Below are positions 22,916-58,387 of a stretch of DNA of 64,000 nt, piece after piece; within the stretch, counting starts at the first letter, position 1; each line of letters begins with the position of its first letter. The stretch lies in sequence record NC_061443.1. One strand, 5' to 3'. The position numbers were made by a program, and so were the translations under genes. The notes under the pieces were generated by a model. The model saw only the letters and a program-made list of their open reading frames with translations, made no database searches and was not told where the DNA came from.

Positions 22916-22966
22916 ATAGTCTCTGGCGCAATAACGCGCTCTACAACAACTGCCAAGGGGCACACT

Positions 22967-23338
22967 ATGACTAACTCATTCAATTCTGTTTGCGAAATCT
23001 TTGAAGCTATGAACGAATGCGCGAGCGATTCAGCATTCACCAAACAGTGTGGCTTCCCGTACCCTAAAGTAGAAATTTTGCAGTGTGGCCTGCAGGAAGA
23101 TTTAGGTGTGTACGCGTCGATGGCCGACGGCGTGAACTTCTTAATCGCAGATTCAGATGACCTGTTCTCTGAGCACCTTAAAGGTGACGGTGAGATCACT
23201 GTCTGCCGTATCGAAACACCTAACGGTGAGATGTTCGACGAACCTGAAGCTATCGTTACGCAGTTGGGGACATTTAACGACTTTGCAGAAGCATACGCAG
23301 CATTCACCGCTGCCGTAAACGCTGAACTCAACAAATAA
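22967..23338 (+). CDS. small acidic early protein
   Basis: AAGGGG RBS; about 22 D/E versus 5 K/R by hand count. Confidence 0.8.
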   Translation: MTNSFNSVCEIFEAMNECASDSAFTKQCGFPYPKVEILQCGLQEDLGVYASMADGVNFLIADSDDLFSEHLKGDGEITVCRIETPNGEMFDEPEAIVTQLGTFNDFAEAYAAFTAAVNAELNK

Positions 23339-23383
23339 TAGGTCAAAGGCGCTATAGAAATATAGCGCTGTTTATCGTACTAT
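23329..23383 (+). promoter_or_regulatory. early promoter module 2
   Basis: ..CAAATAATAGGTCAAAGGC box, TACTAT at 23378. Confidence 0.7.
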
Positions 23384-23434
23384 AAAGATGTTGCGCAATG
23401 ATGCGCACATACAACTTCTGCCAAGGGGCATACA

Positions 23435-23809
23435 ATGAAAGCAGCAAACTTTGATAAAGCATTTAACGCGAAAGATGAAGCAACCCTGAACGCATACGCA
23501 GCGCAGATTCTCGAAGCGCTCAACGCTCTGGGACGTAGCGACCTGAAGATTGAAATCATCTTCGGCACTGACCCGTTCAGCGAGTACCCTGACTTCGTTA
23601 ACGACCCCAACGGTTTTCGTATCAGCCAGAACGGCGAAGAAATTTTCGATATCTACACCCCGACAGAAAAACAAGTTGAAGGCGATGCGTCTGACGCTTT
23701 CATCTACGCTTCATGGGCCGAGGTCGAAGCTCCGTGGGGCAAGATCGTTTCTGATAATGACGTTGCTGAAATCGCAGCGCACCTGAACGAATCTATCCCA
23801 GCTCTGTAA
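23435..23809 (+). CDS. small acidic early protein
   Basis: AAGGGG RBS; about 23 D/E versus 8 K/R. Confidence 0.8.
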   Translation: MKAANFDKAFNAKDEATLNAYAAQILEALNALGRSDLKIEIIFGTDPFSEYPDFVNDPNGFRISQNGEEIFDIYTPTEKQVEGDASDAFIYASWAEVEAPWGKIVSDNDVAEIAAHLNESIPAL

Positions 23810-23867
23810 CGAACAACTGACTGCGGGGTTACGGCCCCGCTTATTACAACAACTGCCGAGGGGCACA

Positions 23868-23922
23868 GAGTAAATAACTGGCAGAAAGCGCCGTAGCAAT
23901 GCGGCGCATATCAACGTATTAT
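23868..23922 (+). promoter_or_regulatory. early promoter module 3
   Basis: GAGTAAATAACTGGCAGAAAGCG box, TATTAT at 23917. Confidence 0.65.
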
Positions 23923-23970
23923 GTAATCTCTAGCGCAATGACGCGCTCAACACTGAAAGAGGCAACAACA

Positions 23971-24216
23971 ATGTCAGAGAAACAAATCACTATCGACGTA
24001 ATCGCAGACGTAGCATCGCCAACAGAAGTTGTGTTTGAAGACGGCGAGACTTCTACTCAATGGCTCGCGCCGTTCGATCTGCGCCTGACTGTATCGCAGA
24101 ACTGCGGCCCTGCCGGCGTACCTGAAGTGAACATCATCGGCGATGAAGATAACTTGCGCCGCTTCTTGGCAGCGAACGATCAATTCGAAGACTCTGAGAT
24201 CGTAGACGTTATCTAA
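23971..24216 (+). CDS. small acidic early protein
   Basis: GAGG RBS before ATG 23971; about 17 D/E versus 4 K/R. Confidence 0.75.
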   Translation: MSEKQITIDVIADVASPTEVVFEDGETSTQWLAPFDLRLTVSQNCGPAGVPEVNIIGDEDNLRRFLAANDQFEDSEIVDVI

Positions 24217-24223
24217 CAAACAA

Positions 24224-24248
24224 AGAGCGGCGCTTCGGCGCTGCTTTT
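24224..24248 (+). terminator. intrinsic terminator
   Basis: GAGCGGCGC-TTCG-GCGCTGCTTTT. Confidence 0.75.
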
Positions 24249-24272
24249 CTATTTCTGACTGAGAAAGCCGCT

Positions 24273-24800
24273 ATGAAAAATCAATATCTCATTCTGCGTA
24301 TGCCTGCAACAAACTTCTACGACAAACAGTTTTTGATGCGAGGCTTCAACGCCGCGCGCATTGAGCAGGTCATTGGCGTTATCGTCATCATCGGCGACGA
24401 GCATTCACACTCGCTGAAAAACAGCATGTACCGCCTCGCAAAAATTCACGTCGAACAGCTTACATCTGACACGCAACAAAACTTAGTCAAGCTGCGCTGG
24501 TCGAGCGTAGACAGTAAACTCATTGAAGAAGGCATGACACGTATACCTACTGAGCTGACCGACGCCATACGTGCGATGCGTAACAATCGACTGTACTACG
24601 AAGTCGATACGACGATCCCGCAGGCGTTTCGTGAATGCCACACTGAATTTGATATGCCGACTGGCTCGCAGATGCGGGAGCGCATAAATAAACGCTTGCG
24701 TGACTCGCAGAAGAAAGACGTTCTTGATAAATTCACTGTAGAAGAATTGTTGCAGCACTTAAAGAAACGTACTGGCGCAGAGATTACAATCAAGCTGTAA
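24273..24800 (+). CDS. hypothetical protein
   Basis: ORF in operon. Confidence 0.75.
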   Translation: MKNQYLILRMPATNFYDKQFLMRGFNAARIEQVIGVIVIIGDEHSHSLKNSMYRLAKIHVEQLTSDTQQNLVKLRWSSVDSKLIEEGMTRIPTELTDAIRAMRNNRLYYEVDTTIPQAFRECHTEFDMPTGSQMRERINKRLRDSQKKDVLDKFTVEELLQHLKKRTGAEITIKL

Positions 24801-24863
24801 TAACGAATCAACGTGTGGCGTTACGGCGCCACATCGACACAACTTAATAGAGAGAATCAAATC

Positions 24864-25472
24864 ATGTCTATCGTAACCTTCTTTGTAAAACGCTCGTATG
24901 CTTCACTTGGCGCAGGCAACTTCGCTATCGCTTCATCTTGCGTTCAAGAGCTTGCCGAAGCTGAATGTCTAATCGTGTACACGAACACGGGACTTGGCAA
25001 CACGTTCGCCTTGAAGAACATCACGATTACACCGCTCGATGAAAACAGCGTGACACTTTCATTCGATCCACTGACCGATGTTCACGCGCTGCCTGCTTCG
25101 ATTCTCCCTAAAGAGCGACTGAAAGAATCAGTCGAACGTACCGTAATGTCAGAAGATGATATGCGTGAAGTGCCGCGTTTCTGTGTAGCCAACGATGCGT
25201 CAGGCAACAACCCGAATCTGCTGGCGCTTGATCTTAACTGTCGCCAACGTTTCGTGCAGTACCACGGCGGTCTATGTACACTGACTGATCTTGTGCTGGC
25301 GCTGTATGAAACAGGCGTTCATATCTCTGACATTCACCAAGGCGTGAAACAGAAAAGCAACGTTACTGCCGTGCTTGCACAATATCCCCGCACTGTGTTT
25401 GAGTTGAACAAAGACAACGGCGTTGTGAATGACCAGCTGCCTATGCTGGCGCGCATGACCGTACTAATGTAA
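24864..25472 (+). CDS. hypothetical protein
   Basis: ATG 24864 with GAGAG RBS. Confidence 0.75.
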   Translation: MSIVTFFVKRSYASLGAGNFAIASSCVQELAEAECLIVYTNTGLGNTFALKNITITPLDENSVTLSFDPLTDVHALPASILPKERLKESVERTVMSEDDMREVPRFCVANDASGNNPNLLALDLNCRQRFVQYHGGLCTLTDLVLALYETGVHISDIHQGVKQKSNVTAVLAQYPRTVFELNKDNGVVNDQLPMLARMTVLM

Positions 25473-25519
25473 ACATCTATCGCCTCGCACATGCGGGGCT
25501 TTTCTATTTGGAGAAAGCT

Positions 25520-25867
25520 ATGATCTACGAACGCGAAGGCCTTGAACAGAAAAACTGCATCGAGCTACACGCTATTGCTGAACAGCGTGGCCTGTTATCT
25601 GACTTCGATGAAGAAGATGATATCGACGAGCACCTGCTTATCGGCATTATTCTTGACGCGCAGAACGAAGACCTCGACGCTGAGGTCGAAGAATGTGAAG
25701 AACGCGACGCCGAAGAATACTGCGACGAGTGTGGTGGTTCATTCGAAGGTCATGAAGGCCTTGACGAAGATGAACAGGATGCGCTCGATAAGCAACGCGC
25801 CGAAGATGATCGCGACCCTCGTATCAATCGCCGTGACGGCCAGGATGGTTCTGACGACTACTGTTAA
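25520..25867 (+). CDS. acidic protein with N-terminal Rho-N/HeH-like module
   Basis: GGAG RBS; LEQKNCIELHAIAEQRGL...LLIGIILDAQ. Confidence 0.7.
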   Translation: MIYEREGLEQKNCIELHAIAEQRGLLSDFDEEDDIDEHLLIGIILDAQNEDLDAEVEECEERDAEEYCDECGGSFEGHEGLDEDEQDALDKQRAEDDRDPRINRRDGQDGSDDYC

Positions 25868-25922
25868 GTAAACCCGGAGTCTGCCAAGCGCTGGTGGCCT
25901 CACTCACAACGAAGGAGTAACA

Positions 25923-26273
25923 ATGAAGCGCAAAGTAATATTGATAGACATAGCAGAGTTTCAAAGCAACCTACCGATAGCTGTACCGTCGATAATCGAC
26001 TTCACTGATATCGAATCAGTGGTGTTTGTCGTGAAGACGAATGCAGAGTACGGCGGCATCGAATATTTAGGCGCGTACTTAGCGTCTGAGATCTTCGTGG
26101 ACTATACACAGATACCGTTGGCCCAAACGATCAAGATCAACGCGTACGGTGTCGTACCGTTAGAAGATTCAATGAAGAACAATCTTCAAAGCGGCTATCA
26201 GTACACGGACGATGTGCCTGACGAGCACAAACGCATCTATGCTGCAACGCCAACTACAATAACGTTCGCGTAA
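25923..26273 (+). CDS. hypothetical protein
   Basis: AAGGAG RBS. Confidence 0.75.
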   Translation: MKRKVILIDIAEFQSNLPIAVPSIIDFTDIESVVFVVKTNAEYGGIEYLGAYLASEIFVDYTQIPLAQTIKINAYGVVPLEDSMKNNLQSGYQYTDDVPDEHKRIYAATPTTITFA

Positions 26274-26278
26274 TACCT

Positions 26279-26309
26279 AAGGGCTGCCATTGCTGGTGGC
26301 CCTTTTTCA
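26279..26309 (+). terminator. intrinsic terminator
   Basis: AGGGCTGCCA-TTGC-TGGTGGCCCT-TTTT. Confidence 0.75.
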
Positions 26310-26312
26310 TTT

Positions 26313-26321
26313 CTGTAAATA
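26313..26321 (+). promoter_or_regulatory. CTGTAAATA box
   Basis: directly after a terminator, 39 nt before ATG 26352. Confidence 0.6.
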
Positions 26322-26351
26322 CCTCGTACATTCAACAATGCGAGATATACA

Positions 26352-26720
26352 ATGCGCCGCTTTCTGACAGTCTTCAATGTCACTCAACAAGAATTTGACG
26401 AGCTACGTTTCTATCGCCATAAGCTCAACATCATAACGACTCTGCGCCGTACACACGGTATCTTGCTGGCTGTACGTGAGACAGGCCGCGTGTTCAATGT
26501 CGTAACTGCTATCTATCAGCAGGCAGAAGAATACGATCTGCGCCGTGTAGACTTCACTGCTCCTTGTGAGGTCACGTTTGAACTTGGTGAGCGCTTCCTT
26601 GAATTGAAGCAAGCAATCGCAAATAACCTGCAAGATAAAAGCATCCATTACTTCGGGCGCACGTTGAATCTCAATGAAGTGCAGGAGCAACTGTACGCCA
26701 CCAAACTGGAGATAATCTGA
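26352..26720 (+). CDS. hypothetical protein
   Basis: ORF in operon. Confidence 0.7.
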   Translation: MRRFLTVFNVTQQEFDELRFYRHKLNIITTLRRTHGILLAVRETGRVFNVVTAIYQQAEEYDLRRVDFTAPCEVTFELGERFLELKQAIANNLQDKSIHYFGRTLNLNEVQEQLYATKLEII

Positions 26721-26965
26721 TGACAACAATCGGAGCATCACTTGGTGCTCGCTTCGCTGCCACATCTTCGGAGCGTTGTTCTGCCCGCAAGAAAGCGCAG
26801 CCTCGTAATAAAACGCTCACGGCCGCAACGACTGCTGATATTCATAAAGCTGTCGAACGCCTGTCTATTAAACTGAATCTCACTCGCTCGAACACAATCG
26901 AACTGGCTATCAAGGAGCTGTGTGCGAAACACGGCATTGCAATAGGCGAACCTGATGGCGTCTGA
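26720..26965 (+). CDS. ribbon-helix-helix (CopG/Arc-like) DNA-binding protein candidate
   Basis: KTLTAATTADIHKAVERLSIKLNLTRSNTIELAIKEL fits the beta-helix-helix pattern. Confidence 0.55.
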   Translation: MTTIGASLGARFAATSSERCSARKKAQPRNKTLTAATTADIHKAVERLSIKLNLTRSNTIELAIKELCAKHGIAIGEPDGV

Positions 26966-27320
26966 CACTATCTACTGCCGATTGTACGGCGTTCAGTACC
27001 GTCTGAGAGTTACAGGCATAGACTTCTCACAATCACCTACTGCGTACACCGTAGAGCCTTGTGACCTGTTGCGTATGATGCCACGTATCATGGTGGGCGT
27101 TGCTTACGACATATATACGCCGTACAACGTACTCAAAGCGGGACGCGCAGACTTCAAAATCAAACTGATTGAGAAGGTGAGCGCAGACGAGTGGCGATAT
27201 TCATTTGTTGATTACGCAGGCAGACCGTTCAGCACTATTCTTAAACGGAGAAAGTATGACCATTGGTTTGATCAAAGTCCTAGGCCTAAAGGACAAGGCC
27301 CCAAAAGGGTTCGACCTTGA
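26955..27320 (+). CDS. hypothetical protein
   Basis: ORF in operon. Confidence 0.65.
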   Translation: MASDTIYCRLYGVQYRLRVTGIDFSQSPTAYTVEPCDLLRMMPRIMVGVAYDIYTPYNVLKAGRADFKIKLIEKVSADEWRYSFVDYAGRPFSTILKRRKYDHWFDQSPRPKGQGPKRVRP

Positions 27321-27888
27321 TATCACGCCAGTCTCACGCGACGACGATTGGTGGTCACTGAGTCCTTTCTATCTTGGACCGTGCCGTAAGCCCGATGGAA
27401 CGATGTTCCTAAACATGGAGAACATGTGGCAGTACAGCAAGGTGTACGAAGAACATCTGGTCAACTCGAACGACCTGTTTCACGGTGAGATATCCCGCGA
27501 GTGGTGGGAGTGGCATTTAAAAGGCAGCACAACTGAACAGGCGCATCGCTATCCAGCGGGGAAGGGTCGAAAGGCCCTGTTCTCGAAATGGGGCGACTTG
27601 CGCCTTTCGTACATTCCCGCACGAAAACAGATCTACGTGCCTGAGTATGCGAAGTTGGTGCTCCATAAGCCGAAGTTCAAACGCTTGTTGAAGGAGTATA
27701 AGAAAGGTGCCAAGATAGTCCTCAGGGATTATGACACTTACGACATTCAGAAAGCCTATCCCGATTCTCGTAGTCCTTGGCTGTCTGCCATTCAAAACGA
27801 GAATGCAAAGTTCGGTCATGCGTTTGTTATTGCATTGGCCTTGATGTTTCACGAACGACCACTATGGTACAATCAATGGGTAATCTAA
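27256..27888 (+). CDS. NADAR-superfamily-like protein (DUF6939-like)
   Basis: GGAG RBS; LSPFY...DG..F..MENMWQYSKVY resembles NADAR SNF...DG....VEHYFQA.KF; also LSYIPARKQIYVPEY, KIVLRDYD, GHA. Confidence 0.5.
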   Translation: MTIGLIKVLGLKDKAPKGFDLDITPVSRDDDWWSLSPFYLGPCRKPDGTMFLNMENMWQYSKVYEEHLVNSNDLFHGEISREWWEWHLKGSTTEQAHRYPAGKGRKALFSKWGDLRLSYIPARKQIYVPEYAKLVLHKPKFKRLLKEYKKGAKIVLRDYDTYDIQKAYPDSRSPWLSAIQNENAKFGHAFVIALALMFHERPLWYNQWVI

Positions 27889-28193
27889 AGTATTTAGCCT
27901 GCATCGAGTTAAACACAAGAGAAGGCAACCTCAGAATGCCTATCTTGCCTCGCTGTGATATGCGTTCTTTTCTTCTCGATAGCCTCACAGGTATCAAGGT
28001 GCCTGTGACGTTCGATACCACAAATATCATCAAGATACACAACCAGACGTGCGGTAGCCTGCAAATGCTGACCGTGGCAGATATGATTCTATGGTCGTCG
28101 TTCGAGCCTGAAAGATTCACGTTATACATTGAACGGATATCTACTGCTATCGAGAACACAAGCGCCCAGCAGGCTGCTGAACTCTGCAAATAA
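27876..28193 (+). CDS. hypothetical protein
   Basis: ORF in operon. Confidence 0.6.
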   Translation: MGNLKYLACIELNTREGNLRMPILPRCDMRSFLLDSLTGIKVPVTFDTTNIIKIHNQTCGSLQMLTVADMILWSSFEPERFTLYIERISTAIENTSAQQAAELCK

Positions 28194-28238
28194 TTGGCTA
28201 AAATAGCCATTCAGTCTGATACGCTCCTGTGTTATACT
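28184..28238 (+). promoter_or_regulatory. early promoter module 4
   Basis: CTGCAAATAATTGGCTAAAATAGC box, TG-T-TATACT at 28233. Confidence 0.8.
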
Positions 28239-28283
28239 ATATGTGAGCGCAGTGCTCATACAACCCACGCTGAGGAGCGTATC

Positions 28284-28733
28284 ATGACCACTCTATCTAT
28301 CGCTGATTTGAAAACCCCTGCTGCTTTCACTACGAACCTGACTTTCGGTCACATGGAAGAACTGCGGGCCAACCTAGAACGCGCCTTGAATCGCCCTGAC
28401 CTTGAGGTCTATGTCGATTGTGATTCTAACTACACAATCGAAGAAGCAAACACTGACGGTCCTGACCAGCTGGTGGGCGACCATGAATGTATTAACGTTC
28501 ACGTTCGTTATGCGGGTATGTCGTTTGATGAATCAACGGCGAAAGGTGTGTGGGATATCCTGATGCAAACTCCACACGAAGATAACAGCATGAGTGAATG
28601 GTCGAACTCATACATCATGTTCGTGGCTGACGAAGACCTCGACGCGCTGGAAGAAGTGACGGTGGAAAACGGAAATCCACGTATGTACGAAACATTCGTT
28701 GATCGCATCAACTACTGGTTACCTAAGCTGTAA
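28284..28733 (+). CDS. acidic early protein
   Basis: GAGGAG RBS before ATG 28284. Confidence 0.8.
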   Translation: MTTLSIADLKTPAAFTTNLTFGHMEELRANLERALNRPDLEVYVDCDSNYTIEEANTDGPDQLVGDHECINVHVRYAGMSFDESTAKGVWDILMQTPHEDNSMSEWSNSYIMFVADEDLDALEEVTVENGNPRMYETFVDRINYWLPKL

Positions 28734-28735
28734 GC

Positions 28736-29157
28736 GATTTGTGAAGGGCATTTGCGAGTGCCCTTTGAAAATCCTAAACCATAAGCTGAGGAGCTTAACA
28801 TGTCATCTTCTACTACTCTGACTTTCATCTTCCCAGAACTCACCACTCTGGAAGTAACCATCGGCAACGGCGTTGTACCTGCGCGCCTTGAGGTTGCAGA
28901 GAATAAAAGCAAAACGTTCAGCGATATTGAAGCGCTGCGCCTGATGCAAGACTCAAACGTTAACGGCGTAATGTCGGGCTTCGACCTGTCGCTATTGAAT
29001 CTGCTTATTGACCGCCACAACAATCGTGAGCACTTTCACTGTCAGGAGTGCGTAATGTCAGGCGCAACATACGCCCCATCGACGGGCTTGTACCTGAGAG
29101 TATCGCACCACCGCTAAGATTTGTGAAGGGCATTCTAACGAGTGCCCTTTGAAAATC
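28736..29157 (+). repeat. duplicated intergenic hairpin cassette GATTTGTGAAGGGCA...GAGTGCCCTTTGAAAATC
   Basis: copies at 28736-28773 and 29118-29157, bracketing gene 28800..29117. Confidence 0.85.
28800..29117 (+). CDS. hypothetical protein
   Basis: GAGGAG RBS. Confidence 0.65.
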   Translation: MSSSTTLTFIFPELTTLEVTIGNGVVPARLEVAENKSKTFSDIEALRLMQDSNVNGVMSGFDLSLLNLLIDRHNNREHFHCQECVMSGATYAPSTGLYLRVSHHR

Positions 29158-29534: not shown

Positions 29535-29598
29535 TTGTTGCTCGCAGGTTCTTACGAGAGCCTGCTGTCAACATAACCCATAAGCTGAGGAGCTTAAC

Positions 29599-30003: not shown

Positions 30004-30013
30004 TAACTAAACA

Positions 30014-33624: not shown

Positions 33625-34026
33625 ATGGAAAAGACGTACATGACACATTGGGGATCGCGCTATGTGCGGTCCTCTTCCGGAAAGTGGTATTCAGTTCATG
33701 GGCGTGATGGTACTTGGGTAACGAATCGTTATGGTACGCAGTTCTATCGTAGCGGCTCTGAGGTATGGAGGGACATAACTCTTGCCGACCGTCAGTCGTT
33801 GGAACGTGAGTTAATCAAACGCACCAGTGAAGACTACACCGAGCAAAAGCGTAGGTACGAATACTGGGGACGATTGGTGAGAGCGATTGCTCGCTGTTCA
33901 GAAGAGGAGAAGAATGAGCATACGGCAGAACTTGCCGAGATGATCGAAGCGCTTAGACAGCAATTCTATGGACAGAAAGTGCAGCAATTAAGCACAACAT
34001 TGGACGAAATAGCCGTTAAATCATAA
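33625..34026 (+). CDS. hypothetical protein
   Basis: ORF in operon. Confidence 0.7.
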   Translation: MEKTYMTHWGSRYVRSSSGKWYSVHGRDGTWVTNRYGTQFYRSGSEVWRDITLADRQSLERELIKRTSEDYTEQKRRYEYWGRLVRAIARCSEEEKNEHTAELAEMIEALRQQFYGQKVQQLSTTLDEIAVKS

Positions 34027-34044
34027 GCTCGTTCGTGCTATAAT
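33990..34044 (+). promoter_or_regulatory. early promoter module 5
   Basis: AAGCACAACATTGGACGAAATAGC box, TG-C-TATAAT at 34039. Confidence 0.75.
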
Positions 34045-34093
34045 AGAGATGAACGCTAGACAGTCGTTTAGCTACTTACATGAGGATATGTAT

Positions 34094-36981: not shown

Positions 36982-37557
36982 ATGGAAAAGAAATTCTGCA
37001 AACTGGCGCACATTGGCGCTGATGTGATCATGCCAGCTATCCTGTACGCACTGAATAGAAAGATGCAGGCAGGCATTCAAGTAGATCTGGCCGAAGCGTA
37101 CACCTTGCTTAACGATACTCAAGCCGTGTATCTCACTATCGCAAGCGGGCAGCCAGATCGTTACTACACGCAACTTGAGCCTACCATTCGAGCGCTCCTT
37201 GTGAAGTATGAGATACAGTGGGCGCTTGACCGTGATGCGTTGGCGAAATACTGTCAATCGTATATGAAGCGTAAAGGTTTCACTCACGTTGAAGACGATG
37301 TGTATTCATATCCAGAAGTTGTCGCGTATAACAATTACGACCGCGTGTTCATACGTGCTCTGATTGGTACGCCTGAATACAACCCACTGGAAGCTGCTAT
37401 CCAAGACGAGATGGACGTCGCGGCTGAGATGGACGTGATTGATAAGAAACTCGACCGCATAGAGGAAGGCTGCTGCTCTGAGTGCGGCACAAAACTCGAT
37501 CCCGATATTGATGGTCCGTTCATGTGCTTGGCATGTGACGAGGACGATGGAGAATAA
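36982..37557 (+). CDS. hypothetical protein with C-terminal Zn ribbon
   Basis: CSECG...MCLAC. Confidence 0.75.
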   Translation: MEKKFCKLAHIGADVIMPAILYALNRKMQAGIQVDLAEAYTLLNDTQAVYLTIASGQPDRYYTQLEPTIRALLVKYEIQWALDRDALAKYCQSYMKRKGFTHVEDDVYSYPEVVAYNNYDRVFIRALIGTPEYNPLEAAIQDEMDVAAEMDVIDKKLDRIEEGCCSECGTKLDPDIDGPFMCLACDEDDGE

Positions 37558-41240: not shown

Positions 41241-41270
41241 ATAGGGAGGTCCTTAACGGGATCTCCCTAT
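41241..41270 (+). terminator. hairpin / intrinsic terminator
   Basis: ATAGGGAGGTCC-TTAACG-GGATCTCCCTAT. Confidence 0.6.
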
Positions 41271-41291: not shown

Positions 41292-42272
41292 ATGCGATTC
41301 GGATTCGCCTGCAAACTGATTGAACCGAACGGTAAGCAGCCCTACACAAATAAGAGCCTGAGCTATAAGCACTTCTCTGCGTTGTCTGCGCCTGACCAGC
41401 ACGGTAAACTCTTGGACGTTGTTACGCACAATCTGACTTCATTGCTCAACATGATAAAGCACGTTGGCAGACTGCGTACCGATATGCGTATGTTCCGAAT
41501 CACAAGTGAGTTGCTTCCACTGTATACTCACCCTAAGGTGTTTCACATGTACCTACGCCACGATATCGCGGCACTGGTTGAATCGTTACTTGCCTTATGT
41601 GGTGCAGAGGCTCGACGACGTGATGTGCGACTTTCGTTTCACCCAGGACAATTCACGGTGCTCGCATCTGATCGACCTGACGTTGTTCAGAACTCGATTG
41701 CCGAACTTGAGTACCATGCGTACTGCGCCTATCACATGGGATATGGCAGACGCTTTCAAGACTTCAAGATCAACATTCACCTGAGTGGTAGACTCGGTGC
41801 TACGGGATTTAGAACAGCCTTTAGCAAACTCTCTGACCGCTGCCGTTTGATGCTGACCGTGGAGAATGATGAAATCACTTCGAGCGTCGAGGACTGCTTA
41901 ACGTTATCCGACATATGCCCTATAGTGTTGGACATTCATCACCACTGGGTAATGACTAACGAATACATACGACCAGAAGATGATCGTGTCCAGAGAGTTA
42001 TAGACTCTTGGAGAGGCGTTCGACCTGTCGCGCATTACTCTGTGTCTCGACCTGAGTTCGTTAAGTCTCGTGGACTGCCTGATCAAAACAAGCTGTCTGC
42101 TAATCGTATGCAGTTACGAGCACACTCTGATTACTATCACAATGAAGACGTAAACGAGTGGGCGCTTTCGTTCACTGCTTTTGACCTAATGTGCGAGTCA
42201 AAAGCGAAGAATCTAGCTAGATCGAAATTGGCATGTTTTAGCCTCAACTCTGCAAATAACTGGACAAAATAA
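41292..42272 (+). CDS. uvsE: UV damage endonuclease UvsE/UvdE
   Basis: RFGFAC, MFRITSELLP, RLSFHPGQFTVL.S, INIH, LTVENDE, VLDIHHH, HSDY, DLMCESKAKNLA. Confidence 0.92.
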   Translation: MRFGFACKLIEPNGKQPYTNKSLSYKHFSALSAPDQHGKLLDVVTHNLTSLLNMIKHVGRLRTDMRMFRITSELLPLYTHPKVFHMYLRHDIAALVESLLALCGAEARRRDVRLSFHPGQFTVLASDRPDVVQNSIAELEYHAYCAYHMGYGRRFQDFKINIHLSGRLGATGFRTAFSKLSDRCRLMLTVENDEITSSVEDCLTLSDICPIVLDIHHHWVMTNEYIRPEDDRVQRVIDSWRGVRPVAHYSVSRPEFVKSRGLPDQNKLSANRMQLRAHSDYYHNEDVNEWALSFTAFDLMCESKAKNLARSKLACFSLNSANNWTK

Positions 42273-42305
42273 GGCTTGTTTCTGTAGGTAGCCCTGTGAT
42301 ACACT
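42250..42305 (+). promoter_or_regulatory. early promoter module 6
   Basis: CTGCAAATAACTGGACAAAATAAG box, TTGTTT -35, TG-A-TACACT at 42300. Confidence 0.8.
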
Positions 42306-42356
42306 AGATATGAGCAATATCGCTCGCTTATAACTAGACTGACTGAGGAAATCGCA

Positions 42357-44479: not shown

Positions 44480-45672
44480 CCGAAGACAGAATGAACATTG
44501 AACATATCCGTAGCGTTACAAAAGAAGTCTTCAAAAAAGGCACCGTGCAGCAACGCGATGCGCTACGTTCAATCGCTAACAAGGTGCTGGCGCCAAGCGT
44601 TATGTTTGCCTGTGAAGACACCGCCCCTGATGTAGAGACTGCGTACCGTCTGCTGGAAGATATTAAGTTCAGTGGCGACGGTACTCAGATGCTGCCTGCC
44701 GACGGCGTGTATGCACTCGATTCTATTCTGAATAAAACGTGGCGCGAAGACTTCTTTAGCGCCGTGTGTAACATGGCATTGACAATGTATGCCACTGACC
44801 CAGCTACTGTGGGTAAAGGCTACTGGCCAAAGAATCACAATGACTTTAACCGACTGATCACCCGCGCATTCATCTGGGTTGTGGCCCAGCACGGTCTGAT
44901 CAATCTACTCTCCCCGAGAGATGCTCATGTGGTAAGCCATACTCGTCTGCCGCAGTTCATGATTGCTACACAGGTCGTTGGACAAGACGAAGGTTGCTTG
45001 CGTCACTACACCCTGTACCAACCGCAGCAAGATACAGGCAGCATGGATTCCTACAATGTAGTGCCTGATAGCTACATCGAAAAAATTCGTGCAGACCGCC
45101 GGGCGAATCAGCCGCCTGAATACGAAGAAGCCGCAAACATGTCGTTCTCTGATCTTGCCGATCTGTGTGAGCGCCTGCACGTCATTGGTCCTGAGGCCAC
45201 GTTCCCTCCTTGCAAATGCAAAGTGGAAGATGATTGTGAATGTGACGAAGATGAATACCAGTCGCGTGAAGATTTTGATGAAGACCAGGAAGAGCTACTC
45301 GAAACTTTCTACAATAAGTTCGGCTTCCCTGACGATAGCTCCGACGAGCCAGAAGAAGAAAAGTGGCTTGAAGGTATCTCACTCATGGAAGTTGAAGTCG
45401 ATCTGCCGACCGTGCGACTGCCTACGCCTGAACTCAACACTATGCGCAACAATAGCCGCATGAAGAAGCCTCACCAAAAAGCGCGTCGTGAGAAAATCAG
45501 ACTTACTCCTGAACAACAAATCTGGCATAAGGTTGATACGGATCCGCTGTCTATTGATCGTCGTTTCGCTATCAGTCTCGTATCTCGCCACACATGCGGC
45601 GTTAATCGTGCTGTCGCTACGCAGCGTGAAGCTATGGCAGTCGCTGCTGCTTTGATGGAAGTCAGCGAATAA
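44476..45672 (+). CDS. hypothetical protein with acidic tract
   Basis: long ORF; GAGGAAGG RBS. Confidence 0.8.
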   Translation: MTEDRMNIEHIRSVTKEVFKKGTVQQRDALRSIANKVLAPSVMFACEDTAPDVETAYRLLEDIKFSGDGTQMLPADGVYALDSILNKTWREDFFSAVCNMALTMYATDPATVGKGYWPKNHNDFNRLITRAFIWVVAQHGLINLLSPRDAHVVSHTRLPQFMIATQVVGQDEGCLRHYTLYQPQQDTGSMDSYNVVPDSYIEKIRADRRANQPPEYEEAANMSFSDLADLCERLHVIGPEATFPPCKCKVEDDCECDEDEYQSREDFDEDQEELLETFYNKFGFPDDSSDEPEEEKWLEGISLMEVEVDLPTVRLPTPELNTMRNNSRMKKPHQKARREKIRLTPEQQIWHKVDTDPLSIDRRFAISLVSRHTCGVNRAVATQREAMAVAAALMEVSE

Positions 45673-45717
45673 CTGGTCAGAATAGCGCTTCTTCGTGAGG
45701 CGCTTCTATGATATAAT
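45663..45717 (+). promoter_or_regulatory. early promoter module 7
   Basis: CAGCGAATAACTGGTCAGAATAGC box, TG-A-TATAAT at 45712. Confidence 0.8.
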
Positions 45718-45785
45718 CATAGATAGAGCAATAGTGCTCTCAACGTTATCTCAACCATACGTTTAACAACGGGAATTGTCATACT

Positions 45786-49926: not shown

Positions 49927-49960
49927 AACGGGAGACCTTAACTGGTTTCCCGTTTTTCAT
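49927..49960 (+). terminator. intrinsic terminator
   Basis: AACGGGAGACC-TTAACT-GGTTTCCCGTT-TTT. Confidence 0.75.
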
Positions 49961-49989: not shown

Positions 49990-50931
49990 ATGACTAAAAT
50001 GATCAACATGCCGTTTGCTACTTTTTCTAGTCGTAGCTCATTCTTCTCGGCAAAAGTTCGTGAACTCGATCTCCAGAACGTCTGGAGCTACGTTGTATCA
50101 AACAACAAACCACAATGGCAAGGCGACCCATTGCTGCACCACATGCACTATCATTCTACCGAGCACATGAAGCAAGTAACTGCTCTCGCCCTGTGGCTGC
50201 TGAATGAAGAAGCCGAACAACCATGGCAGTATGATCTGGGTGCGCTGCCGCTGGCTGTCGCCTGTATGTTCCACGATATGCACCATTCTCTTGGCCGCTT
50301 GAGCGATGCAGTCAACGTGCGTACTGCACAAGACGCTTTCAAACAATATGTGACCGTGTGTGAAGACCCACGCATTATCGACCAGCAGGAAATCATTCTC
50401 GAACTGATAGGCATTACGGAATTCCCGTACATGAAGAACCGCCAGCCGAAGAATCTGATTGAGCGTTGCATTCGTGATGCGGATATCCTATACGGTATGC
50501 AGGACGATGCACTGGACGTTGTGATGTTCGCACTACGCCGTGAGGTGAATCGTGCTGTGAACAAGCCAACGCACTTCACGCCAGAACAGTGGGCAGTAGG
50601 TCGTGTTGACTTCCTCATGTCTGTTGAGATGTATACGCCTGCAGCAAGTGCGATCATGGACTGGCTGTTGGCAAAAGACAACGATCACAATCATCAGTCT
50701 AAGATTGATAGCTGGATGCGGGATAACGTTATCTTCCGTGATACGTCAGCACACAAGCTCCAGGCCAATGATGTGTTGTTTATCGACACTGAGGCAGACA
50801 GTACGCCGAAGCGCCGTTTGATTGAACGTGTTGAGTCAGTACATCCGTACATCAACTTCTATTTCCACGACGGCGAAACTATCTCGCTGCGTGACGGTGA
50901 GAGTTGTGTGGTCTGCGAAAGACGCAAATAA
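49990..50931 (+). CDS. HD-domain metal-dependent phosphohydrolase
   Basis: YHSTEH, ACMFHDMHH, IRDAD. Confidence 0.8.
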   Translation: MTKMINMPFATFSSRSSFFSAKVRELDLQNVWSYVVSNNKPQWQGDPLLHHMHYHSTEHMKQVTALALWLLNEEAEQPWQYDLGALPLAVACMFHDMHHSLGRLSDAVNVRTAQDAFKQYVTVCEDPRIIDQQEIILELIGITEFPYMKNRQPKNLIERCIRDADILYGMQDDALDVVMFALRREVNRAVNKPTHFTPEQWAVGRVDFLMSVEMYTPAASAIMDWLLAKDNDHNHQSKIDSWMRDNVIFRDTSAHKLQANDVLFIDTEADSTPKRRLIERVESVHPYINFYFHDGETISLRDGESCVVCERRK

Positions 50932-50975
50932 TAGGCTGAAATAGACGTATACGAACCACGTGCCTGTGATATAAT
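50922..50975 (+). promoter_or_regulatory. early promoter module 8
   Basis: ACGCAAATAATAGGCTGAAATAGA box, TG-A-TATAAT at 50970. Confidence 0.75.
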
Positions 50976-51007
50976 ACGCATAGGCACACATAATAGAGAG
51001 AACTCGA

Positions 51008-51712: not shown

Positions 51713-51714
51713 TC

Positions 51715-51945
51715 ATGATGCACGATTTGTATAAGGTAAGTGCTATCCTGTTCTACACGCTGGGCGCTATGGCTTTCCTTGCACATATCGTAGGCTTCAT
51801 GAAGAACTGGATGAAAATTCAGGAGATGCGCCAGAAGGCAAAAGCGAAAGCCGCTAAGGTACGCTCTCCACTGCAAGACATTAAACGCCGTCTGCGTAAA
51901 GCAGAAGAACGCGCACGGCATCGCCCACGTAAATTGAGAGACTAA
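51715..51945 (+). CDS. small membrane-anchored basic protein
   Basis: one TM helix followed by a basic coiled tail. Confidence 0.7.
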   Translation: MMHDLYKVSAILFYTLGAMAFLAHIVGFMKNWMKIQEMRQKAKAKAAKVRSPLQDIKRRLRKAEERARHRPRKLRD

Positions 51946-51947
51946 TC

Positions 51948-52256: not shown

Positions 52257-52257
52257 C

Positions 52258-52833: not shown

Positions 52834-52880
52834 ACCTTACTTAACATGGGCGCTTACGGGCGCTCTACTGGAGAAACATT

Positions 52881-54503: not shown

Positions 54504-54961
54504 ATCGTAAACAATACCTAACATTGAAGGGAAACAAAATGCAATTCGAACAAAACATTCTGGTAGTTAATCGTGTAGCTCTTATCATGGGTGATGACTT
54601 AGTGGCTAAGTGGGGCGAGGCAGCAAATGCCAATCGCGATCAAGCTGCATACGCAACAATCGTCATTCTGTCTCGCTTGCAGCAAAAGATTATCACCGCT
54701 CTTGCTGCTGAGAATCCAGAAGCCTGTTGTCGTCCTGATATGCTTTGGACGGACTACGGTTCAATCTCAACGTCCGGCCTGTTCGTTATTGCCTCATCGG
54801 CAGATCGTGAGGTGCTGAATCACTTCGAGGACCACGACTACCTGAATCATCTGCACACGATCAAACGTGTCGCCGAAGAGAACGGGTTCACGTTAACAGT
54901 TACTCCAGTGAAGCACTTATTCCCATTCACTAACACTGAAATCCCAGCTAACATGAAATGA
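54500..54961 (+). CDS. hypothetical protein
   Basis: GTG 54500 or ATG 54539. Confidence 0.7.
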   Translation: MNRKQYLTLKGNKMQFEQNILVVNRVALIMGDDLVAKWGEAANANRDQAAYATIVILSRLQQKIITALAAENPEACCRPDMLWTDYGSISTSGLFVIASSADREVLNHFEDHDYLNHLHTIKRVAEENGFTLTVTPVKHLFPFTNTEIPANMK

Positions 54962-54969
54962 GGTGACAT

Positions 54970-55269
54970 ATGCCACGTGAACAAATCCTGATGAATGATG
55001 TTGCCATCGTCCTGACTATGAGTGAGCGCCGTGCGTTCCTTGGTCCGAAAGCAGACGGCTTTGTGTACCTCCCATCGAAGGAGGCCCTTACGAAGTTTGA
55101 GGCGCATATCAAGAAGTATGGCAGTTCTGATGACTATGCGTTTATCGAACACCGTGAACTGCACTCTCTGAACTCTGCGGGTATTGTAGCTATCGCTCAT
55201 GCTGTCGAGTCTGACTCTGAGCGCCCATGGCTGTGGACGAAAGAAGACTTCCGCGTCAAGCTGTGGTAA
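54970..55269 (+). CDS. hypothetical protein
   Basis: GAGGTG RBS. Confidence 0.75.
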   Translation: MPREQILMNDVAIVLTMSERRAFLGPKADGFVYLPSKEALTKFEAHIKKYGSSDDYAFIEHRELHSLNSAGIVAIAHAVESDSERPWLWTKEDFRVKLW

Positions 55270-55322
55270 GCATAAAACTGGCTAAAATCGCGGTATCAAT
55301 CTGAGTCTGTCTGTGATACAAT
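55268..55322 (+). promoter_or_regulatory. early promoter module 9
   Basis: AAGCATAAAACTGGCTAAAATCGC box, TG-A-TACAAT at 55317. Confidence 0.8.
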
Positions 55323-55374
55323 AGAAGCGTAGCTTGTGCTGCGCTTTCTTACACTACGTCTGAGGAGACAACTG

Positions 55375-55836
55375 ATGGAAACAATCAAACCCACATTTTC
55401 TGATTTAGAGCTGCAAGATCAAATGATGGATGTGGCTGCCCAGAAGATTATCGAACTGAAACCTGAATGGGTGGACGTTTGTGTTGCTGCGTTGCGCCTG
55501 TATCTGATCGTGTGCGACGATATCGGTGGCCCTATCCCTGAACTGCGTTTCGTTCATAACGCGAAGCCTTGCCGCCTACAGTTCAACTTGCTGGAATCGT
55601 CTGGCGGTACCGAGTTCGTTGCGAATGAGATCGATAAAGACAAGCAGATGGAAATTGTTGAAGCGCTGTTGTCTACAGCCGAGGCGAGTCCGACAGGTCA
55701 CTCTATGTTAGACTTCGCAATCTGTTCTGGCCGCCTGTTTATGATTGGCTATGACGGTCTTGCTGGTACGCTCGATAAGATCTGCTTCCGTGCTGACAAG
55801 AAAAACTACACCATGAATCTGGTCGAAGGGGAATAA
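55375..55836 (+). CDS. hypothetical protein
   Basis: GAGGAG RBS before ATG 55375. Confidence 0.75.
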   Translation: METIKPTFSDLELQDQMMDVAAQKIIELKPEWVDVCVAALRLYLIVCDDIGGPIPELRFVHNAKPCRLQFNLLESSGGTEFVANEIDKDKQMEIVEALLSTAEASPTGHSMLDFAICSGRLFMIGYDGLAGTLDKICFRADKKNYTMNLVEGE

Positions 55837-55837
55837 T

Positions 55838-56518
55838 ATGAAACCTGATTACACTCTGCTTAAACGCAGTAAGACGAACGAAGATGTTTTCGCTTTCGTG
55901 TTTGATGGCGACGTGTTGGCTAAATTCAATGCCTCCAACTTATACAGAGCGTTTGTGGAGACGCTCAAGACAAACTGCATCAATGAGGTCGATATCCTGT
56001 GGCGTGACGGCACACGCACTGTTGAGCAACTGGTGATTCATCATACCAAAGAGTTCGCCTCGTTCGACACTATCGTCCACGACTACCTCGTATGCTTGAT
56101 GCTTCGCGCACAGGGTGTTGGTCATTCGCTCGCTGTCCCTGTCGATATTCGCTCTATGTATGATGCCGACGGCCCGATGATCAATGAGATTCGCATTGAT
56201 AGTGAAATCGTCGCTGACATGATGCGCCATATCAAAGACGCGCCTGTGGACGTCATAGACGATGAAGACGATGAAGACGACGACATGGACGAAGACGACG
56301 AGTGCTGGGATGAAGACCAGACCGAGTTCCACGATATCGAAACAGAATCTATCGCCGACAACAAATTGCAGATTGGCGATTGGGGATATCGCGCACATGA
56401 CTGGGCGATCACTCTGACCGACGAACAGGTAGACCGCATCCACTTCCTCGAAGTTGGAATTGACCCTGACATTGAACTGCCTCTTGCAGATGATGCTAAG
56501 AAGGACGCATTCTTCTAA
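55838..56518 (+). CDS. acidic hypothetical protein
   Basis: AAGGGG RBS; D/E tract. Confidence 0.75.
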   Translation: MKPDYTLLKRSKTNEDVFAFVFDGDVLAKFNASNLYRAFVETLKTNCINEVDILWRDGTRTVEQLVIHHTKEFASFDTIVHDYLVCLMLRAQGVGHSLAVPVDIRSMYDADGPMINEIRIDSEIVADMMRHIKDAPVDVIDDEDDEDDDMDEDDECWDEDQTEFHDIETESIADNKLQIGDWGYRAHDWAITLTDEQVDRIHFLEVGIDPDIELPLADDAKKDAFF

Positions 56519-56709
56519 TGAAAACGATTAACGAACAGGTCAAAGAATTGAAACAGCGCGGCGTGCTTATTATCGAAGAACACCAGAAACACACGCTGCC
56601 TGATTTAACCTTCACGCTAGATTGCATGTGCCTGTCACACACGAAGCGAGAAGTAGAGACAACCACGCGCGGCCGCGTTGTTAAGATTCGACTGACTAAC
56701 GTTCACTAA
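56518..56709 (+). CDS. small hypothetical protein
   Basis: TAATG overlap. Confidence 0.6.
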   Translation: MKTINEQVKELKQRGVLIIEEHQKHTLPDLTFTLDCMCLSHTKREVETTTRGRVVKIRLTNVH

Positions 56710-56722
56710 CTTTTGTGGTCTT

Positions 56723-56797
56723 GGCCCGCCCGTCCAGCAATGCTCACCCCCAATGAGGTGTCTCGCGCAGAGGCATGACGGTCACCGGGTCCTTTTT
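56723..56797 (+). ncRNA. candidate structured RNA (multi-stem junction)
   Basis: nested pairings GGCCCG/CGGGTC, CCGTC/GACGG, ATGC/GCAT enclosing CACC/GGTG and CTC/GAG, then TTTTT. Confidence 0.35.
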
Positions 56798-56853
56798 AGA
56801 GCGCACTTCCTAGTACGCTGTATAAAGTAAAACACAATCAACAGGAGGCTGTT

Positions 56854-57252
56854 ATGAAGTTCAACGATGTGTCCACTAAAGCTCAGGTGGTTCTTATGGC
56901 GAGTGCATTCGGTGGTGCGGTGGAAGTTCTGTCCCGTTCAATGGACGATGAAGGTCGCAAGTTTCTGGAAGTTGCGTTGCAGCGTGTCGGTCTAACCGTT
57001 GGTGAGTTCCAAACTCTTATCAATGACCTCGACGATCCTACCAGTCGAGAGATCGTTGCTGTTATGGAAACAGCGCAGGCAGAAGATTCTGAGCGTGATG
57101 CAGAAGCGCAACGCCAACGTCTGGCTGATGAAGAGGACGATGAAGACGAAGAAGCTGCCGACGACTCTGATACAGACGCAGACGGTTGGCAGGACCTGCA
57201 TGAAGATCGCATATGTCTCATATGTAACCGTGAATACTGCGTCTGTCACTAA
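56854..57252 (+). CDS. acidic protein with C-terminal Cys/His motif
   Basis: AGGAGG RBS; CLICNREYCVCH. Confidence 0.8.
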   Translation: MKFNDVSTKAQVVLMASAFGGAVEVLSRSMDDEGRKFLEVALQRVGLTVGEFQTLINDLDDPTSREIVAVMETAQAEDSERDAEAQRQRLADEEDDEDEEAADDSDTDADGWQDLHEDRICLICNREYCVCH

Positions 57253-57253
57253 T

Positions 57254-57308
57254 CTGCATAAATCTGGACAAAACGACGGTTGTCTCAAATAGCTGCCTGA
57301 ACTATACT
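57254..57308 (+). promoter_or_regulatory. early promoter module 10
   Basis: CTGCATAAATCTGGACAAAACGAC box, TTGTCT-17-TATACT. Confidence 0.8.
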
Positions 57309-57315
57309 ATATAGA

Positions 57316-57505
57316 CAGCGAGACAACGTTCTCTCTGAATGCCTTTGTAATTGCTTTGACCATGTGTTTTCTTTTTCCCGGCACATGGTCCTTTTTAAAG
57401 ACGGCTTCCAGCGAGGCTGCTTTAAAAAGGGTTCGATACCCTTTGAGCGCGTCGGGCTTTACGCGGTTTTCGCCTTACGTGCTCTCATGCTAAACCGCAA
57501 AGGAA
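57316..57505 (+). ncRNA. structured 5' leader or ncRNA with possible pseudoknot
   Basis: perfect 9-bp and 11-bp inverted repeats, an alternative hairpin, and a loop GCGGTTT complementary to AAACCGC just before the RBS. Confidence 0.5.
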
Positions 57506-57511
57506 ATTGAA

Positions 57512-58225
57512 ATGCCTACTACTTCACGTCCTAAGACAGAAGACAAGTTCTCCCGTGCTCGCGCTGCTAAGAACTCACCTGAACGTCAGGCAGCGGCTGC
57601 TAAGAAAACTCCACGAGGTCCTTCCTCGGTTCGTCCTAAATCAACGGCAGATCGTGAGCCTAAGATTCGTGACGAGGAGCGTGTGTACAATCTCGTACAT
57701 GCAATTCTGAGCGCGTGGAAAGCTGATGTGGGACATGCCGAAAACACGGCAGCATCTGCTGGTATCATCAAAGTGTCTCGTCGTAAAATTGAAGGTGCAT
57801 TGCGTGACCTCAAGAATACACGCTTCACTAAAATCCCGACGCTCATTAATGATATCCTGACAGGCTCTGATATCTGCGACGAGTTCGGCATGTGGGTGTA
57901 CGTCGAGCACGATAGTCCTGATTGGATTTTCGTCCGTCTGCCTGATAACAGCACACCTGTGATTCGTGCCGATATCAGTTACGAAAAGACTGGCGAAAGG
58001 TCCGCGTCTGTCACAACGTCCAGTGAAGCACTCATGGAAACGTTCGACGACAATGAAGACGAAATCGAGATCGAAATCTTCGACTGCACTGAAAGCGATA
58101 TTGAAGACCTCGAAGCTGCTGAGATGCGCAAGCGTCTGATCGATGCGAAAATCATCAATCCAGAAGCTGCCCCGAAGCTGTCACGCAATGACTTAATGAA
58201 GCTCTGCGCGTACTACAGCGCATAA
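57512..58225 (+). CDS. hypothetical protein with basic N-tail and C-terminal HeH-like module
   Basis: AAGGA RBS; IEDLEAAEMRKRLIDA...LSRNDLMKLC. Confidence 0.8.
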   Translation: MPTTSRPKTEDKFSRARAAKNSPERQAAAAKKTPRGPSSVRPKSTADREPKIRDEERVYNLVHAILSAWKADVGHAENTAASAGIIKVSRRKIEGALRDLKNTRFTKIPTLINDILTGSDICDEFGMWVYVEHDSPDWIFVRLPDNSTPVIRADISYEKTGERSASVTTSSEALMETFDDNEDEIEIEIFDCTESDIEDLEAAEMRKRLIDAKIINPEAAPKLSRNDLMKLCAYYSA

Positions 58226-58271
58226 GCAATAACGAGCAGGCAGCACGTACACTGCCTGCTATCTGCGAAGT

Positions 58272-58327
58272 ATGCAGAAAACTGGACAAAATCGTGGTTG
58301 TTATCTGACGACCACCTATGCTATACT
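58272..58327 (+). promoter_or_regulatory. early promoter module 11
   Basis: ATGCAGAAAACTGGACAAAATCGT box, TTGTTA -35, TG-C-TATACT at 58322. Confidence 0.8.
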
Positions 58328-58387
58328 TAATGCAGGTGCACAACGCACCGCAAACAAAACTACCACTTATACTGAGGAGTATTAAAC

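Follow-up and report, generated by a model that had tools for sequence, protein, structure and literature searches.

The 64,000-nucleotide stretch of DNA analysed here (hereafter the window) corresponds, with 100% identity, to bases 186001-250000 of the Erwinia jumbo phage pEa_SNUABM_2 (MZ443786.1; 265,442 bp; Alexandravirus), and the annotation of every gene across it is 'hypothetical'. A preliminary description of the window had listed nine small hairpins said to stand at the beginning of early transcripts. All nine are found at the positions given for them and fold as described, and a tenth, that of cassette E in Table 1, had escaped that description. Taken together with the DNA upstream of them, the nine sites prove to be copies of one repeated unit of about 100 nt, in which the hairpin directly follows a strong promoter of the extended -10 type. 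The present analysis concerns this cassette and the role that its hairpin may play.

Architecture and copy number of the cassette

A profile built from the noted sites (nhmmer) detects 13 copies and no more in the genome, and these all lie on the + strand within 52 kb (208.8-261.0 kb); 11 of them (cassettes A to K) lie in the window, and cassettes L and M lie outside it. The parts follow one another in the order box, variable spacer, extended -10 element (TGnTAnnnT), GC-rich hairpin of 4-8 bp, CA-rich leader and Shine-Dalgarno (SD) sequence. The box, (A)AATAACTGGACAAAAT, is centred near position -50, with its WGG 38±1 nt ahead of the -10 hexamer in all 13 cassettes, and several copies of it extend over the stop codon of the gene that comes before. 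It occupies the position of an UP element, yet its core (CTGGNCA) is not AT-rich; it could be a site for the C-terminal domain of the polymerase α subunit or for some activator. In only about five of the 13 copies does the spacer, which separates the box from the -10, fold into a stable hairpin. Within the hexamer, T1, A2 and T6 are invariant (13/13), and TGn precedes it in 10 of 13 cases. The cassettes flank small ORFans, genes without family matches.

Throughout this work the predicted +1 is the seventh base past the -10 hexamer, and all start-site positions rest on this prediction. The hairpin comes directly after the discriminator and starts 4-12 nt past the last base of the -10, that is, at -3 to +6 of the predicted +1. 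The preliminary description was thus right to place the hairpins at the very start of the transcripts predicted from these strong extended -10 promoters. Their strength ranges from -3 to -13 kcal/mol, several of them being weak (-3 to -7 kcal/mol). The leader behind the hairpin, about 20-25 nt long (about 200 nt in cassette J), is enriched in CAAC (eight occurrences in 12 leaders, compared with about 1.2 expected) and provides an unstructured, CA-rich linker to the SD sequence. None of the start-site hairpins is followed by a U-tract and a terminator scan of the + strand does not list them; with CA-rich sequence rather than a U-tract downstream, they are not terminators.

The comparison was extended to the colinear 50-kb region of eight relatives, which together with pEa_SNUABM_2 represent three genera: six phages of Alexandravirus (SNUABM_22, SNUABM_35, Alexandra, AD1, SNUABM_33 and SNUABM_20), the Snuvirus SNUABM_7 and the Sasquatchvirus Y3, the orthology of the last two being assigned by hand from order and sequence. 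Each of the eight carries 10-11 cassettes at syntenic positions (nhmmer). A hairpin (≤ -3 kcal/mol) is present in 78 of 94 cassette copies, and 77 of these 78 start within the same interval of -3 to +6; in 10 of the 11 orthologous groups the hairpin is confined to one 10-nt stretch at the start site. The cassette H group has no hairpin there in any of the nine phages. Instead, an inverted repeat encloses its -10 hexamer, and the arms, although wholly different in SNUABM_20 (13 bp) and SNUABM_7 (12 bp), are still complementary; as it surrounds the -10, this repeat can act solely in read-through RNA or in DNA.

No Rfam family matches in the window, and no account of the promoters or transcripts of Alexandravirus, Y3 or AD1 turned up in the searchable literature. 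A pattern scan of IMG/VR for more distant cassettes returned matches that were nearly all at chance level, and permissive genome scans (with the box alone or with TGnTAnnnT alone) were too noisy to use.

The hairpins exceed what the genome offers by chance. The first 24 nt of 10 of the 13 cassettes fold at -5 kcal/mol or below, compared with 11% among 6000 windows drawn at random from the genome (Mann-Whitney 4e-6; binomial 5e-8), and under a simple-hairpin criterion 11 of 13 cassettes pass, compared with 25% of random windows (p = 1e-5). Most single hairpins also outdo their own dinucleotide shuffles. Moreover, the pattern GCAAYRNNGC with a stem of at least 5 bp occurs six times in 265 kb, five of them at cassettes. 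An internal control is provided by a second promoter-like motif, ATCTGTAAATA, of which the genome holds 29 copies (≤1 mismatch) on both strands, 20-45 nt ahead of start codons and often directly after an intrinsic terminator (TTTCATTTCTGTAAATA). A comparable hairpin accompanies four of these 29 sites, which is the background rate. This motif probably marks the middle or late class of promoters and recalls the T4 late TATAAATA.

Conservation, covariation and strand of the fold

Column-wise alignments of orthologues give mean pairwise differences of 0.11 (-10 hexamer), 0.14 (stems), 0.38 (loops) and 0.35 (downstream leader). The stems are under about the same constraint as the -10, and the loops vary about as freely as their flanks. 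The pairing itself is kept by compensation. Group K has GGTGC/GCACC in pEa_SNUABM_2, GACGC/GCGTC in six relatives and CGAGC/GCTCG in SNUABM_7; in group D, GAGC/GCTC is matched by AAGC/GCTT in Y3; in group E the inner four pairs are replaced in Alexandra; and group I shows a change from U·G to U-A. Thus, of the earlier statement that the stems covary while the loop is conserved, the first half holds, and the second fails for the loop as a whole, although three of its positions (R1, U3 and Y6, see below) are kept.

An ungapped alignment of 35 distinct GC-closed hairpins gives the same picture. Double changes occur in four of its five pairs, and 95.4% of its cells are paired, a percentage inflated by construction because the 35 rows were picked for forming hairpins. 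Doubly changed cells number 39, compared with 14±2.7 in shuffles (0/500), and the covariation score is 0.54, against 0.18 when shuffled and at most 0.14 with the partner slid, bearing in mind that the sequences are related, so that shuffles, like E-values, overstate independence. The orthologue comparison and the count of 78 in 94 copies are free of this selection for hairpins.

The fold is also specific to one strand. Inside the helices of 57 distinct hairpins, G·U pairs on the + strand number 25, whereas G·U pairs that exist only on the - strand (A·C-type on the + strand) number two, an asymmetry that amounts to roughly seven against one independent positions. It is thus the + strand, as RNA, that folds, rather than a symmetric site in duplex DNA.

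Within the loops, part of the sequence nevertheless stands out. The preliminary description had reported an AAU(A/G)NY hexaloop as frequent, and this loop is real: five of the 11 cassettes in the window have it, as do 21 of the 35 distinct GC-closed hexaloops from the nine phages. Across these 35, position 1 is a purine in all, position 3 is U in 34 and position 6 is a pyrimidine in 33, and the closing C-G pair is invariant. It may be that R1 and Y6 simply pair (A-U or A·C), leaving an N-U-N-N tetraloop. The loops of orthologues otherwise vary freely (AAUAGU, AAUAUC, AACAAU, AAUGUC, AAUAUU and AAUAUA in group G; AAUAUC, GUUAUC, AUUAUC, GCUUUA and ACUUUC in group F), and other cassettes have loops outside the signature (UUGU, AGUC, GCAGU, ACAAC and CAACGU). 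Identical 10-mers such as GCAAUAGUGC recur in groups G, K and D, where the lower stems beneath them differ.

Such shared loops should be read with the mobility of the cassettes in mind. Cassette A of Alexandra is a chimera that passes, inside the hairpin, from the 5' half of a B-type into the 3' half of an A-type one (3315-3360 of its region); position K of Y3 holds an A-type hairpin together with its flank (37000-37040 of its region); and pEa_SNUABM_2 has three cassettes (A, B and C) at a place that holds two in most relatives, and the genes in between are not the same. These observations suggest that cassettes recombine and that whole cassettes move between positions. Shared loops are therefore no clean evidence of convergence.

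A candidate 5'-terminal stabiliser

A Pfam search of the whole genome gave no match to a multisubunit RNA polymerase (RNAP) beta-type domain (RNA_pol_Rpb2_6), to a T7-type RNAP or to sigma70 region 2. Most jumbo phages are without RNAPs and rely on the host enzyme (PMC13282480). As no phage RNAP was found, host σ70 polymerase is the likely user of the cassette promoters. The cassette looks like an extended -10 early promoter for this enzyme with an element at the UP position, and it is similar to the early promoters of T4, described as 'UP/-35/TGn/-10' (PMC2988021), but without a good -35.

The reading that we favour, with about even confidence, is that the hairpin is a 5'-terminal stabiliser of the ompA or T7 φ10 type, set within an early-promoter cassette that resembles the early promoter plus stem-loop (PeSL) cassettes of T4-like phages. 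Host σ70 polymerase would probably recognise the extended -10, aided by the upstream box, and transcription would begin 6-8 nt past the hexamer. The 5' end of the message would then be paired and a poor substrate both for RppH and for 5'-end-dependent RNase E, so that the hairpin would prolong the life of early phage messages. What leads us to favour a stabiliser is the fixed 5'-terminal position, a conservation that puts structure before sequence, the strand specificity of the fold and the absence of the hairpin from the ATCTGTAAATA class. The pairing is kept rather than the primary sequence, as seen in the covariation, in the compensatory changes of groups K, D and E and in the divergence of stems compared with loops. 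A protective stem should begin within about 0-4 nt of the true 5' end; relative to the predicted +1, the hairpins begin at -3 to +6. A 5' shield was one of the functions suggested in the preliminary description, and it fits both the fixed position and the structure-first conservation; the analogy to boxB and put offered beside it does not, for the reasons given in the next section.

The principle is known from Escherichia coli, where RNase E is slowed when the 5' end is base-paired and where pyrophosphohydrolases such as RppH prefer unpaired ends (PMC3997798); ompA and papA are the classic stabilised mRNAs (PMC3997798, referring to Emory 1992, Bouvet & Belasco 1992).

As in these cases, the cassettes have a short stem-loop at or a few nucleotides from the (here predicted) 5' end, in which pairing matters over sequence, and, as with ompA and papA, the RppH and RNase E pathway is at hand, the host being an enterobacterium. 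The φ10 hairpin of T7, which stabilises its mRNA, shares both features. From its annotated start (NC_001604) the φ10 RNA folds as GGGAGACC-ACAAC-GGUUUCCC (-13.4 kcal/mol), with the same ACAAC loop as cassette K. Unlike those of ompA and T7 φ10, the hairpin studied here belongs to a σ70 promoter cassette of 13 copies that is conserved over three genera, is shorter and weaker (for the pairs and energies, see above) and carries the R-N-U-N-N-Y signature.

Several points weigh against a stabiliser. The +1 positions are predictions from the -10 only. With +1 at its canonical place, 2-4 nucleotides stay unpaired ahead of the stem in cassettes A, B, C and E, perhaps too many for full protection, and outer stem pairs of D, F and I lie upstream of it. 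A purely structural shield gives no reason for the kept loop positions 1, 3 and 6, nor for the near-constant GC...GC top of the stem, and the hairpin is missing from cassette H in all nine phages. The inflated percentage of paired cells mentioned above belongs here too, and a divergent phage polymerase could slip past Pfam searches.

Neither the principle of a 5' hairpin shield nor that of a cassette uniting promoter and stem-loop is new; what appears to be new is a start-site hairpin with a loop signature that is hard-wired, family-wide, into the σ70-type early promoters of jumbo phages without an RNAP. Jumbo phages mostly lack their own RNAP, and the way in which they prevail during the first minutes of infection is poorly known. 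This lineage shows a standard early-expression cassette over three genera, consisting of box, extended -10, 5' hairpin, CA-rich linker and loop-displayed SD sequence. If the hairpin is a decay shield, it would be a compact natural part that prolongs short-lived early messages, may protect them, too, against RNases of the host or the phage during shut-off, and could be put to direct use in expression design in Erwinia and other enterobacteria. If, instead, the loop signature reflects protein binding, the hairpin would give an entry point to a new regulator. The phages can be grown on E. amylovora, so these readings are open to experiment.

Alternative readings of the hairpin

Protein binding is the first alternative to be weighed. 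The hairpin would be a tag whose upper stem and loop (GC-RNUNNY-GC) are read in sequence by an RNA-binding protein of phage or host, which could be an antiterminator of the N/boxB kind, a translational regulator or an enzyme that modifies 5' ends. The signature at R1, U3 and Y6 and the invariant closing C-G pair speak for such a tag, as do the same 10-mers (GCAATAGTGC, GCAATATCGC and GCAATAACGC) found on different lower stems and in different cassettes. However, the signature loop is present in just about half of the cassettes and the loops of orthologues drift at the rate of their flanks; R1 and Y6 may simply pair (A-U or A·C), leaving a tetraloop, and swaps of whole cassettes can spread identical loops without selection. 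We consider a sequence-read tag unlikely.

The early operons do contain intrinsic terminators, as assumed when antitermination through them was proposed in the preliminary description, and some genes behind them have no recognisable promoter; the expression of the genes at 24273-26273, which are in this situation, must depend on read-through. These facts favour a tag, but nothing ties the terminators to the hairpins. The annotation of an RNA 2'-phosphotransferase homologue in the early region of the relatives is another point in favour. On the other hand, a Pfam search of the first genes behind 10 promoters gave no match, and thus no RNA-binding or antiterminator domain, and a scan for an arginine-rich, N-like protein, which was noisy and dominated by non-coding frames, gave no candidate.

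The comparison with lambda is instructive in this respect. Both the lambda nut sites and the cassettes have a hairpin of about 15 nt whose loop is rich in A, placed near the beginning of early transcripts in a phage with terminators inside its operons. They differ in the type and length of the loop, in boxA, which is missing here, in the operon-to-operon sequence differences of the hairpins seen here, in the strict 5'-terminal position, which a nut site does not need, and in the N-like protein, which was not identified here. Lambda boxB has a 5-bp stem and a GAAAA or GAAGA pentaloop, whereas the loops here are of 4-6 nt, with the consensus A-A-U-A-N-Y and the general form R-N-U-N-N-Y; none is GAARA or otherwise a GNRA-like pentaloop. 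No boxA-like partner (CGCUCUUA / GCUCUUUAACAA) follows the hairpin: within the first 45 nt, the closest match to GCUCUUUAACAA has 5.2 mismatches on average, compared with 5.5 in random windows, and cassette A alone comes near, with two mismatches. To the eye, GCUCUACAACAA in cassette A seems a promising boxA, but such a motif is not enriched. The put RNA of HK022 is likewise a cis-acting RNA just past early promoters; it is, however, a two-stem RNA of about 70 nt that has conserved internal loops, whereas the cassettes show one hairpin of 14-20 nt and then an unstructured linker. The analogies to boxB and put drawn in the preliminary description are thus not supported.

An extension of the tag is more speculative. 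The GC-closed R-N-U-N-N-Y hairpin would mark early transcripts for a dedicated phage factor, delivered with the DNA or made first, which might be an RNA-tethered antiterminator or an enzyme that modifies or protects 5' ends. Together with the -50 CTGGACAAAAT box, it would then form an undescribed early-gene control system of jumbo phages without an RNAP, a proposal that we regard as improbable.

The second alternative takes the PeSL cassettes as its model. In T4-like phages, cassettes that combine a stem-loop with a σ70 early promoter are repeated in ORFan-rich regions, the position of the stem-loop being variable and including 'downstream of the -10' (PMC2839356); they terminate upstream transcription and mediate gene shuffling (PMC2839356, PMC4122927). 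By this account, the stem-loop would affect RNA entering by read-through from upstream, serving as an attenuator, an insulator or a barrier at 3' ends, its 5' position would be incidental, and the repeated cassette would also serve the homologous recombination that shuffles early ORFan genes. The likeness is real: as in PeSLs, the repeated unit joins a stem-loop to a strong σ70-type early promoter, with A-rich DNA upstream, in an ORFan-rich setting, and the chimera in Alexandra, the A-type hairpin at position K of Y3 and the three cassettes in place of two are signs of recombination. The repeat around the -10 of cassette H, with the restriction on its action noted above, also agrees with this account. 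The promoters do differ from those of PeSLs in having no good -35, with TGn and a non-AT box (CTGGACA) at -50 instead, and the phages are not T4-like.

It is the hairpin itself that fits poorly. The stem-loops of PeSLs are terminators with G-runs and C-runs at scattered positions, while those of the cassettes have no U-tract, are followed by CAAC-rich sequence, are in several cases weak and would be poor terminators; moreover, 10 of 11 groups have them fixed at the start site. A separate and stronger spacer hairpin, between the box and the -10, could do the terminating job in four cassettes, and recombination requires homology, not compensatory pairing. The PeSL model therefore describes the cassette as a whole well, but leaves unexplained a start-site hairpin that is not a terminator and evolves by compensation, and as an account of the hairpin we hold it to be quite unlikely.

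A third alternative would place the element at the level of DNA or of initiation, either as an operator over the start for a shut-off repressor or as an initially transcribed sequence with a nascent hairpin that hastens promoter escape or brings about a promoter-proximal pause. The palindromes overlap the predicted +1, a frequent site for repressors; escape can be the limiting step for strong extended -10 promoters that have an UP-like element; and the loops are AT-rich and faintly -10-like (AATAGT, AATGAT). Against this, the 25:2 asymmetry of G·U over A·C shows a strand-specific fold, and one DNA-binding protein could not read all of the stems, since they differ between cassettes and change by compensation; an operator in DNA is unlikely given the covariation and the strand asymmetry. 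Nor do the loops contain a -10-like pause element, as the equivalent of the -7 T, which sigma requires in such an element, is not conserved and position 6 is C as often as T. Taken as a whole, this alternative seems to us very improbable. A hairpin promoter of the N4 type for a phage polymerase was rejected, no polymerase being found and the hairpin lying downstream of a good σ70 -10, as was a terminator, for want of a U-tract.

Other features of the window

The positions of the cassettes and of the other elements are collected in Table 1.

Table 1. Cassettes A to K and other sequence features of the window (window coordinates; TG, TGn present ahead of the hexamer)
Feature	Position (strand)	Box	-10 hexamer	5' hairpin	Remarks
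Cassette A	22865..22940 (+)	AATAGGACAAAAT, WGG 22872	TACTAT 22910-22915, TG	GGCGC-AATAAC-GCGCT 22925-22940	
Cassette B	23333..23407 (+)	WGG 23340	TACTAT 23378-23383	TGCGC(A)-ATGA-(T)GCGCA 23392-23407	Spacer hairpin 23348-23369
Cassette C	23872..23947 (+)	WGG 23879	TATTAT 23917-23922	AGCGC-AATGAC-GCGCT 23932-23947	Spacer hairpin
Cassette D	28188..28260 (+)	WGG 28195	TATACT 28233-28238, TG	(TG)TGAGC-GCAGT-GCTCA(TA) 28242-28260 (+); core 28244-28258	Box over stop codon of upstream gene
Cassette E	33994..34072 (+)	WGG 34001	TATAAT 34039-34044, TG	GCTAGAC-AGTC-GTTTAGC 34055-34072	
Cassette F	42254..42326 (+)	WGG 42261	TACACT 42300-42305, TG	TGAGC-AATATC-GCTCG 42311-42326; core 42312-42325	
Cassette G	45667..45740 (+)	WGG 45674	TATAAT 45712-45717, TG	AGAGC(A)-ATAG-(T)GCTCT 45725-45740 (+)	TAA of box is stop of upstream gene; spacer hairpin
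Cassette H	50926..50987 (+)	WGG 50933	TATAAT 50970-50975	None	Inverted repeat 50960-50968 with 50979-50987
Cassette I	55272..55345 (+)	WGG 55279	TACAAT 55317-55322, TG	AGCGTAGC-TTGT-GCTGCGCT 55326-55345	One U·G pair in hairpin
Cassette J	57258..57337 (+)	WGG 57265	TATACT 57303-57308	CAG-C-GAGA-CAACGT-TCTC-T-CTG 57316-57337; core 57320-57333	
Cassette K	58276..58349 (+)	WGG 58283	TATACT 58322-58327, TG	GGTGC-ACAAC-GCACC 58335-58349	Spacer hairpin
ATCTGTAAATA motif (examples)	26311-26321; behind terminators 41241-41270 and 49927-49954				
Intrinsic terminators inside early operons	24223, 25482, 26279, 30014, 41241, 49927				
GC-rich hairpins after genes	23826-23841, 24818-24838, 28747-28770, 29131-29154, 29546-29567, 52852-52869				
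SD-loop hairpins	22948-22960, 23416-23428, 28264-28277, 28779-28792, 29578-29591, 55358-55369, 58370-58381				

In the early leaders the SD sequence (GAGG or AAGG) is often shown in the 4-nt loop of a hairpin of 4-5 bp, for example ACGCU-GAGG-AGCGU, AAGCU-GAGG-AGCUU, UGCC-AAGG-GGCA, GUCU-GAGG-AGAC and UACU-GAGG-AGUA. At the other end, nearly all short early genes have a GC-rich hairpin behind them; many of these hairpins carry loops of the UUACG or UUCG type, and only some have a U-tract.

The GTG start assigned by the open-reading-frame tool to the frame at 55336-55836 falls within the 5' hairpin of cassette I. The true start of this gene is probably an ATG near 55372, as the relatives use an ATG about 45 nt past the promoter, after GUCU-GAGG-AGAC. 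Finally, the annotation leaves long gaps at 26966-27255 (290 nt), 56519-56853 (335 nt) and 51713-51947, the last of which holds an open frame of 76 amino acids (about 51715-51945) with a basic, Arg/Lys-rich tail.

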